Of a stretch of DNA of 64,000 bases, positions 1 through 17,028 are shown in pieces. A program made the position numbers and the translations under genes. Location: IMG/VR virus record IMGVR_UViG_3300049043_000112, positions 124,001 to 188,000 of that record; one strand, 5' to 3'. The first letter of the stretch is position 1. Each line of letters starts with the position of its first letter. The notes under the pieces were generated by a model. That model was given only the letters and a program-made list of their open reading frames with translations. It did no database searches and was not told where the DNA came from.

Positions 1-1743
1 GATTGTATGAGGCAATATTGAAGATTCGGAGATAATTCAAAGGTTTTTTCTGGAATAACATAACTTGTATCACCACTAATATCTCCACCAGTCAGTGCAG
101 TATATCTTAATTCAAGATATGATAAACTTGTATTTGTAAACTTTGGCATTGCACCAGTTAATGGTGATGCATAGAAATACAAAGTACTTAGTGAACTGCA
201 ACCATTAAACTTATAAACATTACTGCCAGTAAAAATACTTCCAATATTTCTACAATAATAACCATAAAATGTAGTTAGAGATGTTCTAGTACTTAAATCG
301 GGGCATGGTAATCCAGTGCTGTGAATGCTAACATATTGAATTTTAGTGTTAGATGAAGAGATACTAAAAGTTGGATCAGTCAGATAATAATTTCCACCTA
401 AATCTAAAGAAACTAGATTTGTAAGGTCTTTTAAATTATAATTACTGCCACTTGTTGTTCCGAATGCTCTAAAATCATTTCCATAAACATTATAAGTTTC
501 GCAGGTATTTGGAACATTTGGCAATGTACAATTAGCATCTGCATTATCTGGATGGAAATATGGTCCACTACTTCTAGATAAATTTAATGTGGTTAATGTT
601 GTAAATCGGTTGCTAATTAGATTTTCTGGAATTGAACCATAAAAAGTTCCACCAAGAGTTAAATTCTTAAGTCCTGTAGGTATTTTTGTAACAATGTTTG
701 AATTTAAACTTCTTTCAGTTGCAGTTTCACTTAAGTATAATGGATTTTGATTTAAAAATAAGTTTTGTATACTAGGAGCAACGAAAGTAAAATCTGGAAA
801 ATTAACAAGACTATTACTTGCAAGATTAAAACTAGTTAAATTCTGAAACTTAACTGCAGGTATACTTGAAATATTTGCAGAATTAATTGTTACAGATGAA
901 ATATTATCAGGATTATAATAATACTGAATATATCTTTCTTTTGAAACTGCAGAACGATAACGAATTGTTGTACCTTGATTTGGAAATCTTGTAAATGAAT
1001 TTGCGTTATCAGTATCTACAATTTTCCAACTTGCTGGAGTATTATTAATTAAAGAAGTAAGTTGAATATTTGCATCTAGGTTTCTAAAGAATCCTGTAAA
1101 TACGACAGGAATTCCTTTCATTGCATAAAGAGATATTGTTCTTCCATCAATATTACACATTATTTTATGTGTAGGAAATTCTGAAGCAAACTCTTTTGCT
1201 TGTGGTGTAAGTGTTGTTTGTAGTCTTGGACCACTTACACTTGGAGATTGTGTTCCAAACTGCAATAGTCCACCAGTAATAATTCCAACTCTTGCACCAT
1301 AAGAAATTGGTGAAGTGTCTAATACTGGAGAGGCACTTGAACTCCAAGCACTGACTCTTGATGTTGAAATGTCTGCGATTTTAACTGTAGCAGAAGGTCC
1401 AGTTCCATCAAGATAACGATAACGAATTGCATTACCACTTAATGCACCGTTTAAAGTTATGTTTCCAAATAAAGTTCTATTGGTTCCTGATTTTGAGTCT
1501 AAAATTGAAGAATATAACTGCGAGTCATAATAATAACAATCTAAAGTCTTATAAAGAGGATTTGATAATCTAGACAGACTAATCCAGTCACCTCTTGTTG
1601 CACCAGCATTTTGCGATCCTCTGATGATATCAAGAATCAAGTGGTGGAAGATTTAATGAATAAAGAGATGTTGTTCTATCTTGAACATCAGAAAGAAAAC
1701 TAGTAACGTTTAAACCAAATAACTTCGGATTGGAAAGTGCCAT
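1..1743 (-). CDS. Leucine-rich-repeat-containing putative virion protein (3' end outside window; one indel near 1635)
   Basis: ATG at 1743 (MALSNPKLFGLNV...). After one frameshift near 1635 the frame reads open to the window edge, with LRR-like units (LTSFNLASNSLVNFPDF, IQKLFLNQNPL, LTTLNLSRSS, LVSLDLGGNYYL). Absent from the ORF track because its stop codon lies outside the window. Confidence 0.7.
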
Positions 1744-1744
1744 A

Positions 1745-2257
1745 CTAGATGGTCCTCATAATAAATGCAAGCGCATAGTATGGTGGACGGTTCTCGTGGT
1801 AATCATCTGCACCTGCTGAATTTGTAGAGTCTGGACCAATATCATTAGTTGTTGCAAGTGCATAACGACCACTTTGACTATTAACGTTATTGTTACCAGA
1901 ATATCTTGAAAGTTGGTGCGTGTGTGATGGCATCTCAGCAGTTGTTAGTTGGTGTGCAGTCTCGCCACCAGTGTTTCCAGGTGCATATGCTCCACTTACA
2001 GCACCAGTATCGGCATTAAATGTGACTCCAGTTCCAGCATCACTACCAGCACCAACGATAAAACGACTTCTTAAGTCTGGTGTTCCACTAGAACCATTAC
2101 AAAGTGCCCATCCTGTTGGAATAGTTGCAATGGTACCAGACCACATAATAATACCACCAATAGGAATTGTTCCATTCCCTACTAATCCGTCAGAATCAGT
2201 TAATTCCTGTATCTGATTCGCAGCAGCATTAACAATTAGAGGTCTACGAGTTGCCAT
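1745..2257 (-). CDS. Phage tail collar domain protein (short fibre / baseplate connector-like)
   Basis: PIGGIIMWSG...IPTGWALCNG...TPDLRSRFIVGAG, GGETAHQLTTAEMPSHTH and ENRPPYYALAFIM are typical tail-collar motifs. Confidence 0.85.
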   Translation of the reverse strand: MATRRPLIVNAAANQIQELTDSDGLVGNGTIPIGGIIMWSGTIATIPTGWALCNGSSGTPDLRSRFIVGAGSDAGTGVTFNADTGAVSGAYAPGNTGGETAHQLTTAEMPSHTHQLSRYSGNNNVNSQSGRYALATTNDIGPDSTNSAGADDYHENRPPYYALAFIMRTI

Positions 2258-5942: not shown

Positions 5943-8900
5943 TCACTGCTCCTCCCAGGTAATACTTGCAGAAATATCCGCTGCTGATGCTCCGCTATTG
6001 TATGTTGTTTGTGATGAAGCACATAGATATAAACTATCTACTTTATTTGTGAGAGGGAAAGAAAGATACTCTTTGTTGTAATCAAAGTATGGTGATAAAT
6101 CATACTGTGCTCCAGATGCAGGTATGAAAATACTTGCCACAACAGTACCAGTTCCAGGAATTGGACTTCTTACTTGAGGATTAACTTTAATTGAAGATAA
6201 TGCTGCAAGAGTAAATTCGGTTGTAATGCCAGAAACTCCATTTCCAGTTGGATCACTATTTTCTTCTTTCAGGAAACTATTTGTGGTCGTCAGAACAATA
6301 TTATCAGATGTTGAATTCAGGGCATAGAAATAATAACCACTAACTGTTCCTCTATTTTCAAGGTAACCTAAAACTGAAATTGGTTTTTGAGTTACATCAT
6401 TCTGATAATATCCTCTAAAGTATCCATAAACTCCAGTATTATCTGAGAGATAAGATGAATTACTTACACCAACCTGTGTTGGATTTCCAGTCTTTCCAAT
6501 ATTTGCACTTGCAGAAAGAGAAAGAGTTCCTGTTGTTGAAGCAGTTGTTTGGAAAATAGGAGTTTTTAGGAGATTTAATTTAACAACTCCAGTAGATCCA
6601 GAAGAAAGACGAGTTGGATAAACTTGAGTTCTATTTCTTACATTTCTTCCAGTGCTGCTTTGAATAAAATCTCTACACTTCAGACCAATCAATGGAGTAA
6701 GTCTATCTGGAATTACTGTAATTGTAGATAATGATGTTGTATTCAATGGAGCATTCAGATAAAGTCTTCTATTCGTTGTATCTACAAAATTAACTTGAAT
6801 ATTTTGGTCTAAGGGATTTGAAGTAACAACTTTGGCACCAACATAGAAAGATGTTGAAAGTCCTGCAGATGTTCCAGCAGTGATATATGGATCTGATGTG
6901 GAAACTCCTGCATTTGTAAGTACAACTTCTGTTCCACCAGCACCGACAGTGTATAGTCTCTTTGAACCATAAACACTTAGAGTTGATGGAGTTGAATAAC
7001 TAAAGAGTTTTACAGTTCCTCTATCTCCACCATCAATATAGTATGAAGCACCATACTTAACAATATGTTCAGAGGATGAACCATAAGAGAACGTAGATGC
7101 AAGTCTCTTATTGTTCGCATATCCAAAACGATTTGCTCCACCACCACCATAAACAAGATAAGTAATTGGAAGAGTAGCATTTCCAAGAGATGAAACTTTC
7201 AGTTGATTAGATGCTCTAAGGTGATGAACTCTTACCCATCTTGCTTCACCATTGCTTACAGGAACATAAGCAAGGAATAGAGCACCAACAGCACCATACC
7301 AGGAGAATTCAATCTTATACATTGTAACCTTGGTTAGGTCAATGTCCCAGATGCTGGTATCAGTTAATATTTCTCCTGTATCAGGATCAACTACAGGTTC
7401 CCCTGCCCTCTTATCACTTACAACATCACTATAAAGTAGGTCTTCAGTCTCTCCATCAAGACAATCACCACTAAATCTAAATCTTGGAATACGATATTCA
7501 TAAACGTTCCAGTATTCTTTCTTTACGTTTTGATTAACCCACTTATCATAATAAGTATTAACTGCATCAATTTGATCTTTAAGAGTTGATGTATCAGAAA
7601 CTCCGAGAGAAGTGTCAACATATCCTTCATTGTTTCCATCACCATCTTCATACAGATATGGAAACATTCCAGTTGGTTTAACTGTAGTATATTTCGTTCT
7701 CGATGCATTAATCAGAGCACCACTCGTTGGTTGTACAAAAGGAACTGGAGTAATTAAAACGTGTGATGAAATTCCAGTAACATTTGTAATTCCAGTTAAG
7801 GAACTTCCATCTAAATTATTCAGTGTCAGTGTTCCTCTACCAGTCGAACTATTGACAGAAACAGATGCGAGTCTATAAATCTTAGTATCTGTAAATCCAG
7901 TAATGACTCCAACATTTGTCCCTTTGGAGTATGATACGTATTGCCCAGTGGAAAGACCAACTGCCATTCCACCAGATTGATAATAAGTAGGAACCGTCGA
8001 AATACCAATATTAACGGTAAATGAAGTGCTTGAATTAACTTGTAGAACATTATATCCAAAAGTTCTATTTGGATAATATTTTGGAGTAACTGGATCAAGA
8101 TAACAAGTCATCCCAATGCCACTTAGAGTTACATACTTACCAGCATCAAAACCGTGAGCAGCAGAGGTCGTAATGACCATTAAACCTGTGCTTATATCAT
8201 ACGTTGCATTTGTAATGGTTTTACCAAGACCAGCAACTGAAATCGTATTTCCACCAGTAACTGATGTAATTCCAACTTGTGATTCACTTTGAAGTAGTGA
8301 TGGATCATAAACTGCTGCATGAGTCATCAGCAGATTATCTCTTAAAATTACAAGGTCACCAAACTTTTTAGGTGTTGCTACTGGATTTTGAAGCGCAGTT
8401 GAATTACTTTGTGACTCTGAACCTCTTGCCGACAGGGGATTTAAAGGATTCGTTCTTCCATAGTCTTGAGTTTGCTGACCTGCGCCAGTTCCAAATGTAA
8501 GAGGGTTTTCATAAATGATGGATTGTGTTCTTCTTACAACACTAAAGTTATCTCCTGTTCCATCATTTCTAGATTCCCAATAATATCCATCATAGTTATC
8601 AAAAATACCATACTTACGAACCGCAGGGTTTTGGACTGATGCACCATCATCATTGATTAGAGATGTTTTAACACCAAAAGTCGCTGCTGATACACGTCCT
8701 GGTTGGTATCTAAAGAATCTCTTTGATGTTAGGATGGCAGTTCTATCTGCTGGACCTTCAATCAGTGCTCCAGACTCTTCAGGGACGTGAGTTAGACCCC
8801 ATCCCATCGTTTGACCCACACCAGAATAAACACCAGTTCCAGCGACTGTGGAGTATTGTTCAGGAGATGGTGACCATTCTGTAGGGTTTACATCATAAGT

Positions 8901-16349: not shown

Positions 16350-16433
16350 TGCGAGTAGGGAGACTTGAACTCCCACGGGCATACGCCCAACAGATTTTAA
16401 GTCTGGTGTGTCTACCGATTCCACCATACTCGC
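16350..16433 (-). tRNA. tRNA-Leu(UAA)
   Basis: GCGAGTA/TACTCGC acceptor stem, TGGTGGAATCGGTAGACAC D region, anticodon loop CTTAAAA, long variable arm, GTTCAAGTC T loop; CCA not encoded. Confidence 0.93.
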
Positions 16434-16472: not shown

Positions 16473-16473
16473 G

Positions 16474-16546
16474 TGCTGGTTGCGAGGATCGAACTCGCCT
16501 CCCATCGATTATGAGTCGATTGCATTCGCCAGATTGCTAAACCAGC
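16474..16546 (-). tRNA. tRNA with CAU anticodon (non-initiator; probably Ile2/lysidine type, alternatively elongator Met)
   Basis: GCTGGTT/AACCAGC acceptor with paired G1-C72; anticodon arm ATCGA-CTCATAA-TCGAT with C29:G41 as in tRNA-Ile2; GTTCGATC T loop. Confidence 0.88.
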
Positions 16547-16575: not shown

Positions 16576-16667
16576 TAGGGACACCTGGATTCGAACCAGG
16601 ACCTCGCGGTAATCTGCCGCTAATACAAGGTATAAGCTTGCTGTTCTAACCGTTGAACTATGCCCCC
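16576..16667 (-). tRNA. tRNA with Ile(UAU) anticodon and a 24-nt variable region (92 nt)
   Basis: GGGGGCA/TGTCCCT acceptor, GTTC/GAAC D stem, GCAAG-CTTATAC-CTTGT anticodon arm, variable region ATTAGCGGCAGATTACCGCGAGGT, CCTGG-TTCGAAT-CCAGG T arm. Confidence 0.88.
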
Positions 16668-16673
16668 GTACTA

Positions 16674-16844
16674 TTATGATGCTTCGTCGTGGTCTGTGTA
16701 TATTCGTAAGAGCTCTTCTTCATCATACTTTACGAGAACTACATTGCCACTTTTGTTCTCGATAAGGTAAGACTCTCCTTGTTCTACCTTATCAAGATAC
16801 TCTTCAAAATTGTTCTCTAGTTCTTCAATCGTGAGTCGTTTCAT
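16674..16844 (-). CDS. Phd/YefM-like antitoxin-domain protein (orphan)
   Basis: MKRLTIEELENNFEEYLDKVEQGESYLIENKSGNVVLV matches the Phd pattern (t.tel+.nf..ll+.v..Ge.v.I......vvl); ATG at 16844 preferred. Confidence 0.7.
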   Translation of the reverse strand: MKRLTIEELENNFEEYLDKVEQGESYLIENKSGNVVLVKYDEEELLRIYTDHDEAS

Positions 16845-17028
16845 AGATTGCAAGATCGGCGTACTCGATTTGGTCTGGTTCAAGATTGCTGGTTACAACT
16901 TCCAGCACATTCATAAATTCTTCGGTGGTGTCACACTGAACGTGCTTTTCGTTACCTTGGTCACTGATAAGCAGAAAGGACTTGGTGCATACATCAATAA
17001 CAATGCCCAGGACGCATTCAGTATTCAT
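16825..17028 (-). CDS. Small hypothetical protein
   Basis: 67-aa ORF immediately downstream of a consensus promoter. Confidence 0.7.
   Translation of the reverse strand: MNTECVLGIVIDVCTKSFLLISDQGNEKHVQCDTTEEFMNVLEVVTSNLEPDQIEYADLAIYETTHD

Follow-up and report, generated by a model that had tools for sequence, protein, structure and literature searches.

What is encoded by a tRNA that carries the rare anticodon UAU together with a long, hairpin-containing variable region, and what purpose might the extra hairpin serve? The gene lies at positions 16576-16667 on the minus strand of the window, the 64,000-nucleotide stretch of DNA analysed here, which covers bases 124001-188000 of the complete 236,016-bp viral record IMGVR_UViG_3300049043_000112. 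The genome has about 36% G+C, its nearest cultured relative is the freshwater Synechococcus myovirus S-SRM01 (Kyanoviridae), and it holds 23 tRNAs, including an Ile(GAU) and two CAU tRNAs. The initial annotation described a class-II-like arm and offered three options: a TilS-independent AUA decoder, a tRNA charged with Leu or another amino acid so that AUA is recoded, or a nuclease-resistant or decoy tRNA.

ARAGORN calls the gene as tRNA-Ile(tat), and Rfam RF00005 scores it at 59.5 bits against a gathering score of 29, with a full-length model match (1-71) and the extra 21 nt treated as an insertion in the variable region. The 92-nt molecule has a five-arm structure with no encoded CCA. A 7-bp acceptor stem (1-7/66-72) contains G1·U72 and G5·U68 wobble pairs, and its 3' strand, UGUCCCU, is followed by the discriminator A73 (16576-16583, with A73 at 16576). 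The D arm is normal (GUUC/GAAC, a 4-bp stem with an 8-nt loop), and the decoding anticodon arm (16625-16641, tRNA positions 27-43) has the stem GCAAG/CUUGU and the loop CUUAUAC, with the anticodon UAU at 16632-16634 and canonical U33 and A37. The 24-nt variable region (16624-16601) comprises a 5' linker AUUA (16621-16624), the extra hairpin (16606-16620, positions 48-62) with a 4-bp stem GCGG/CCGC and a 7-nt loop CAGAUUA (16610-16616, with G-A-U at 16612-16614), and a 3' linker GAGGU (16601-16605) equivalent to an ordinary class-I variable loop of 5 nt. The T arm (16584-16600) has a 5-bp stem CCUGG/CCAGG and the loop UUCGAAU, giving a 7/5 acceptor/T branch. The observation in the initial annotation is therefore confirmed, down to its coordinates. 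Two independent DNA metagenomes from different studies reproduce the gene with zero differences, so the insert is not a read or assembly artefact. We also considered an intron or spliced insert, but no read joint skips the hairpin and one contig from an RNA library spans the spacer and the hairpin without deletion; this is weak evidence, because DNA carry-over cannot be excluded.

The tRNA had been treated as a singular oddity, whereas it belongs to a very large family in phages and bacteria. BLAST of the 106-nt gene against cultured phages found almost nothing, because the family is too diverged, and structure-anchored patterns were needed to recover it. SynMITS9220M01 (annotated as a 95-nt tRNA-Ile) and S-SRM01 (unannotated) carry diverged UAU tRNAs whose extra stems are GCAC/GUGC and CCGC/GCGG, respectively, but whose loop is the same CAGAUUA. 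A structure-anchored pattern returned at least 120 hits in IMG/VR and at least 120 in a collection of 185,579 species genomes. The bacterial carriers include Acidobacteriota (often inside arrays of 10-31 tRNAs), Rhodobacteraceae, Bacteroidota and Bacillota, and the cultured Lactobacillus phages LpeD (loop CAGAUUA) and ENFP1 (loop CAGAUGG) also carry the gene. In all we collected 259 distinct sequences, 192 viral and 67 bacterial. The acceptor, D and anticodon stems differ widely among them, which indicates an old origin and/or frequent transfer, although one Pyrinomonadaceae copy (locus L223) has almost the same architecture as the window gene. The family keeps YUUAUAN as the decoding loop and has A73 in 252 of 259 members. 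Among 3,184 tRNAs in the fetched loci, long tRNAs other than Leu, Ser and Tyr are almost all Ile(UAU), with 244 examples against 1-3 for any other anticodon.

The extra element is always a 4-bp stem with a 7-nt loop, preceded by a linker of 1-6 nt and followed by one of 5-6 nt in 258 of 259 members. It is thus an added fifth arm, inserted between the anticodon stem and an ordinary variable loop, and the term class-II-like is misleading. On 114 distinct hairpin segments the stem is 96.9% paired, against 59.2% in shuffles (0 of 500 reach the observed value) and 26-50% in slid controls, with 131 double-sided changes against 30 expected, so its recurrence is far beyond chance. As the collected set had required GAU and at least 3 of 4 stem pairs, conservation of these features was judged on three samples free of that bias. 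A scan anchored only on the D arm of one sub-family returned about 98 real tRNAs, all with UAU and all with the loop CAGAUUA except for two CCGAUUA and one CAGAUCA. A scan requiring only a UAU loop at a long distance from a T loop gave 120 candidates, of which about 97 have the hairpin, with loops CAGAUUA, UAGAUUU, UAGAUAG, UAGAUCA/G, CUGAUUA, CUGAUUU, CAGAUAA and CAGAUGG, so that only G-A-U at loop positions 3-5 is constant (consensus Y-W-G-A-U-N-N). The same scan also gave a 92-nt UAU tRNA at about 7870-7960 of viral locus L343 with the loop UGGACGA, in which GAC (the Val anticodon) replaces GAU; if the arm sets identity this tRNA would put Val at AUA, but it may also be a decayed copy. Finally, a scan anchored on the hairpin loop and T arm, with the anticodon left free, found only UAU tRNAs among the real genes. 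The window tRNA has all the elements that define this hairpin-type family: a UAU loop on a 5-bp arm, a 1-6-nt linker, a 4-bp hairpin with loop Y-W-G-A-U-N-N, a 5-6-nt linker, the T arm and A73.

A feature that the initial annotation did not notice is that the hairpin resembles the anticodon arm of tRNA-Ile(GAU). G-A-U occupies the anticodon positions of its 7-nt loop, and GAU is the anticodon of the major tRNA-Ile. The genuine loop in these loci is mostly CUGAUAA, from which CUGAUUA and CAGAUAA each differ by one base; about 9 of 58 distinct genuine Ile(GAU) loops from the viral loci have C instead of the near-universal U33 (UCGAUAA, CCGAUAA). When the hairpin is numbered as an anticodon arm, A occurs at '38' in 84% of distinct arms and C-G at '29-41' in 68%, compared with 87% and 55% in genuine Ile(GAU) arms, and with 46-54% and 24-32% in UAU decoding arms; C29-G41 is found in only 10% of all other tRNAs. 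In E. coli the isoleucine identity elements include the anticodon, A73 and C29-G41 (PMC9976931). Measured against that identity set, the window tRNA has A73, and A35 and U36 in its decoding loop, but U34 in place of G34 or lysidine-34, with G-A-U present only in the extra loop. Of the minor determinants, U12-A23 is present, whereas the acceptor stem has G4-C69 rather than C4-G69 and the decoding arm has A29-U41; the extra hairpin has C-G at the position equivalent to 29-41. Two other structural explanations for the loop sequence were rejected: internal A2-U6 pairing, since the loop variants do not covary at those positions, and pairing with the anticodon loop or T loop of the same tRNA, since inspection showed no consistent complementarity across the family.

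To test whether AUA is recoded, as one option in the initial annotation would require, we examined the 733 ATA codons of the phage (11 per 1000; 15.8% of Ile codons). Against S-SRM01 orthologues, ATA aligns to Ile in 51% of 82 positions, to Leu in 15% and to Val in 10%. ATT and ATC align to Ile in 60% and 64%, with the same Ile/Val/Leu spectrum, while the Leu codons TTA and CTT align to Leu in 62-63%. The phage also carries psbA and psbD (193391-194467 and 191591-192649 of the phage record, outside the window). psbA could not serve as a codon test, as it avoids ATA entirely (0 of 22 Ile codons), but psbD has 2 ATA among 17 Ile codons, at residues 205 and 326, and both align to conserved Ile in solved D2 structures (GVAG-I-LGG and NEG-I-R). 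Recoding is therefore not supported. The 236-kb phage encodes neither TilS nor IleRS, nor any other class-I synthetase. The interpretation in the initial annotation is thus partly supported: a TilS-independent AUA decoder fits all the evidence, charging with another amino acid is not supported, and for a nuclease-resistant or decoy tRNA there was no evidence for or against.

Our preferred explanation is that the gene encodes a functional elongator tRNA that would let an AT-rich cyanophage translate its many AUA codons as isoleucine without relying on TilS or on the host's scarce lysidine-modified tRNA-Ile2. Ordinary bacterial IleRS reads G34 or lysidine-34 with a conserved Trp. E. coli IleRS charges UAU poorly; the Trp that stacks on the wobble base (W905) is conserved in tilS-bearing bacteria, and Mycoplasma mobile solved the problem by changing the enzyme to Arg (PMC3575796). 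A phage cannot change its host's enzyme, but a surrogate GAU arm on the tRNA would make it chargeable by such enzymes in any host. We propose that the UAU loop does the decoding, while IleRS recognises the shorter second arm, as a surrogate of the GAU anticodon arm, together with A73, so that amino-acid identity and codon reading are carried by two different arms. Our analysis establishes the structure, its conservation and covariation, its exclusive link to UAU among the real genes of the anticodon-free scan, the alignment of ATA with Ile, the absence of phage TilS and IleRS, and the presence of Trp-type IleRS in bacterial carriers. It is by inference only that we suggest expression (at which only the RNA-library contig hints), charging with isoleucine (for which the ATA alignments are indirect evidence), the binding of IleRS to the extra arm, and the way a five-way junction would present it. 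Each hairpin has one canonical connection, the UAU arm to the D stem through position 26 and the GAU arm to the T stem through a normal variable loop, so that the junction might place the arms side by side or might toggle which one stacks under the D stem. The decoder role is well supported, but we hold the surrogate-arm mechanism to be only about as likely as not.

Several results weigh against the mechanism or test it only weakly. Five bacteria with chromosomal hairpin-type genes all keep the Trp, their IleRS ending in CxRCW in four and CARSW in one, but Trp-type IleRS is the bacterial default. Ordinary short tRNA-Ile(UAU) genes without the hairpin are also abundant in viral contigs (106 real genes in a sample of 120 hits), so the hairpin is not obligatory and other solutions exist. 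The extra loop usually has A at '33' and U at '37', whereas t6A37 is a strong determinant for bacterial IleRS and cannot form on U; that deviation might instead keep the arm from acting on the ribosome. The stem is 4 bp rather than 5, and it is difficult to see geometrically how the anticodon-binding domain of IleRS, about 70 Å from the active site, would reach an arm that leaves the tRNA core. We had predicted that the decoding arms of hairpin-type tRNAs would be more relaxed than those of short UAU tRNAs, but this was not found (A38, p=0.31; C29-G41, p=0.33). Thermodynamic folding was not decisive: the MFE fold of the window tRNA (-29.4 kcal/mol) pairs the anticodon loop and stem with the linker and the 5' strand of the extra hairpin (16606-16641, minus strand), the five-arm fold being only 0.6 kcal/mol higher, whereas the five-arm fold is the MFE in S-SRM01 and is poorly predicted in SynMITS9220M01.

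It remains possible, though we consider it less likely, that the tRNA is an Ile-charged AUA decoder whose hairpin serves another partner, as a determinant or anti-determinant for a wobble-U34 enzyme that keeps U34 from reading AUG, as an anti-determinant against MetRS, or as a shield or handle against host tRNA-targeting nucleases, with GAU a protein- or RNA-contact motif that merely coincides with the Ile anticodon. A fidelity device would be useful, as UAU tRNAs read AUG as well as AUA on E. coli ribosomes (PMC3575796), and the deviations at '33' and '37' and the existence of short UAU tRNAs are consistent with this view. G1·U72 hints at additional identity or anti-identity features: it occurs in 54% of hairpin-type and 33% of short UAU tRNAs (in the window gene, positions 16667 and 16577), against 3-14% of other tRNAs from the same loci, while G1-C72 drops to about 10%, against 55% elsewhere, so that a weak first pair seems to be a trait of UAU tRNAs. 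This reading does not, however, explain why the triplet is exactly GAU in exactly the anticodon positions of a 7-nt loop, or why the stem and position '38' share Ile(GAU)-specific features, and no candidate partner gene is linked to the tRNA and no TilS-like enzyme is encoded in the phage.

More doubtful is a regulatory or decoy RNA that titrates IleRS or interacts with toxin-antitoxin or defence systems, as was suggested for acidobacterial allo-tRNA-UAU. Mukai et al. found allo-tRNA-UAU near toxin-antitoxin genes and saw no activity for six anticodon-swapped variants (PMC5389517). In the window an orphan Phd/YefM-like antitoxin ORF of 69 aa (16674-16883, minus strand) ends 7 nt upstream of the tRNA, matching PHROG 375 at E 7.8e-10 and Pfam PF02604 at 26.8 bits, just under the cut-off, with no toxin partner evident; the nearly isoenergetic alternative fold, moreover, hides the anticodon. 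Against this, the hallmarks needed for translation are conserved across the 259 sequences (the 7/5 branch, the T loop, U33 and A37 in the UAU loop, A73 and often an encoded CCA), the gene sits in phage tRNA clusters that match phage codon needs, the reporter used by Mukai et al. was Ser/Ala-specific and could not detect Ile insertion, and the alternative fold is not conserved in S-SRM01. Recoding through a class-II identity is very unlikely. A73 plus an extra arm does resemble bacterial Leu identity, and nematode nev-tRNA-Ile(UAU), which is charged with Leu, sets a eukaryotic precedent (PMC3333845, PMC4300185), but besides the codon evidence above the arm differs in architecture from those of the phage's own Leu, Ser and Tyr tRNAs, and the G73 that SerRS needs is absent.

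Comparison with known systems shows where this tRNA departs from each. The tRNA-Ile2(UAU) of M. mobile and some lactic acid bacteria likewise combines a UAU anticodon, A73 and Ile reading of AUA, and bypasses lysidine, but is an ordinary class-I tRNA made chargeable by Arg or Lys in place of Trp905 of the enzyme (PMC3575796); here the enzyme in carrier bacteria keeps Trp and the tRNA itself carries an added arm. [quoted passage not shown] (PMC5389517), comprises metagenomic, phage and acidobacterial tRNAs with a UAU anticodon, an extra arm and 'possible five-stem-junction structures'; the six inactive variants had the anticodon changed to CUA, and Ser-like or non-translational roles were presumed. 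Acidobacterial members of our family (e.g. loci L123 and L124), with the long D stem typical of allo-tRNAs and the same CAGAUUA loop, probably overlap that group. The window tRNA lacks the defining 8/4 or 9/3 acceptor/T branch and the long D stem with a tetraloop. Class-II tRNAs also have a stem-loop between the anticodon and T arms, which the ribosome tolerates, but their long arm replaces the short variable loop and has a small (3-5 nt) loop, whereas here a fixed 4-bp stem and a 7-nt anticodon-like loop precede a complete variable loop, and sequence is conserved rather than only length and orientation. Nematode nev-tRNA-Ile(UAU) combines UAU with an extra arm, but this is a Leu-type class-II arm charged by LeuRS, without a GAU loop and with no shared ancestry with this family (PMC3333845). 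Anticodon mimics in viral tRNA-like structures and in mRNAs bound by aaRS follow the principle we propose, an anticodon-like stem-loop outside a normal anticodon arm being read by a synthetase (such work is cited in PMC7590224), but lie in mRNAs or viral genomes and not inside a decoding tRNA with a different, working anticodon. Our literature searches found no description of a GAU-mimicking arm or of its link to IleRS, although an earlier mention in the supplements of Mukai et al. 2017, or in the work of Tomikawa 2018 and Uesugi 2022 on lactobacillus tRNA-Ile(UAU), cannot be excluded.

AUA is the one sense codon that bacteria can normally read only after an essential enzyme, TilS, rewrites the anticodon of a tRNA, and in the textbook view UAU tRNAs are excluded because IleRS rejects them and because they misread AUG. 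The family described here, large and previously uncharacterised, appears to solve the charging problem on the tRNA side by adding a copy of the accepted anticodon arm. In its boldest form, which we rate as slightly less likely than not, this would be a natural tRNA class in which identity and codon reading are physically separated onto two arms, allowing phages and mobile tRNA arrays to bring a TilS-independent AUA decoder into almost any bacterium without changing the host synthetase. If confirmed, it would be a new principle of tRNA identity, would explain the puzzling allo-tRNA-UAU group, and would offer synthetic biology a natural design for decoupling anticodon from identity in anticodon-reading synthetases and a ready-made scaffold for reassigning codons. 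It would also matter for annotation, as such tRNAs are easily mis-typed.

The genomic surroundings of the gene were also examined. A CAU tRNA is the commonest immediate neighbour of hairpin-type UAU genes, in 45 of 141 cases downstream and 29 of 156 upstream, against an 8.7% background. The adjacent CAU tRNA of the window (16473-16546, minus strand) is annotated as Met, but its arm UCGA-CUCAUAA-UCGA has C29-G41 and resembles the phage's own Ile(GAU) arm, so that it may be tRNA-Ile2(CAU); alternatively, a Met tRNA may be co-supplied to outcompete AUG misreading. A tRNA-Leu(UAA) (16350-16433, minus strand) is the third member of the local cluster, which is syntenic with S-SRM01. The RefSeq record of S-SRM01 (NC_070963.1, about 32.9-33.7 kb; positions 1540-2273 of the fetched locus L002) annotates none of its Leu(UAA), CAU and Ile(UAU) tRNAs, and an HNH endonuclease gene that is absent from the window lies between its CAU and UAU tRNAs. 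Locus L461 holds the 3' half of a hairpin-type tRNA (hairpin, T arm, acceptor 3' strand and CCA) with no recognisable 5' half, and may be an integration-site remnant. Finally, a second unusual UAU tRNA-like gene type sits in viral tRNA clusters, at L365:2-79 (+), L352:5395-5472 (+), L363 about 1715-1800 (+) and about 14 further viral loci. It is about 78 nt long, with an acceptor stem, a T arm and a UAU arm, but has only UAUCCCC where the D arm should be and a 21-nt region, AGAAAGGGUAACUGGUUACAU, after the anticodon arm, and neither ARAGORN nor the Rfam tRNA model at gathering score calls it.
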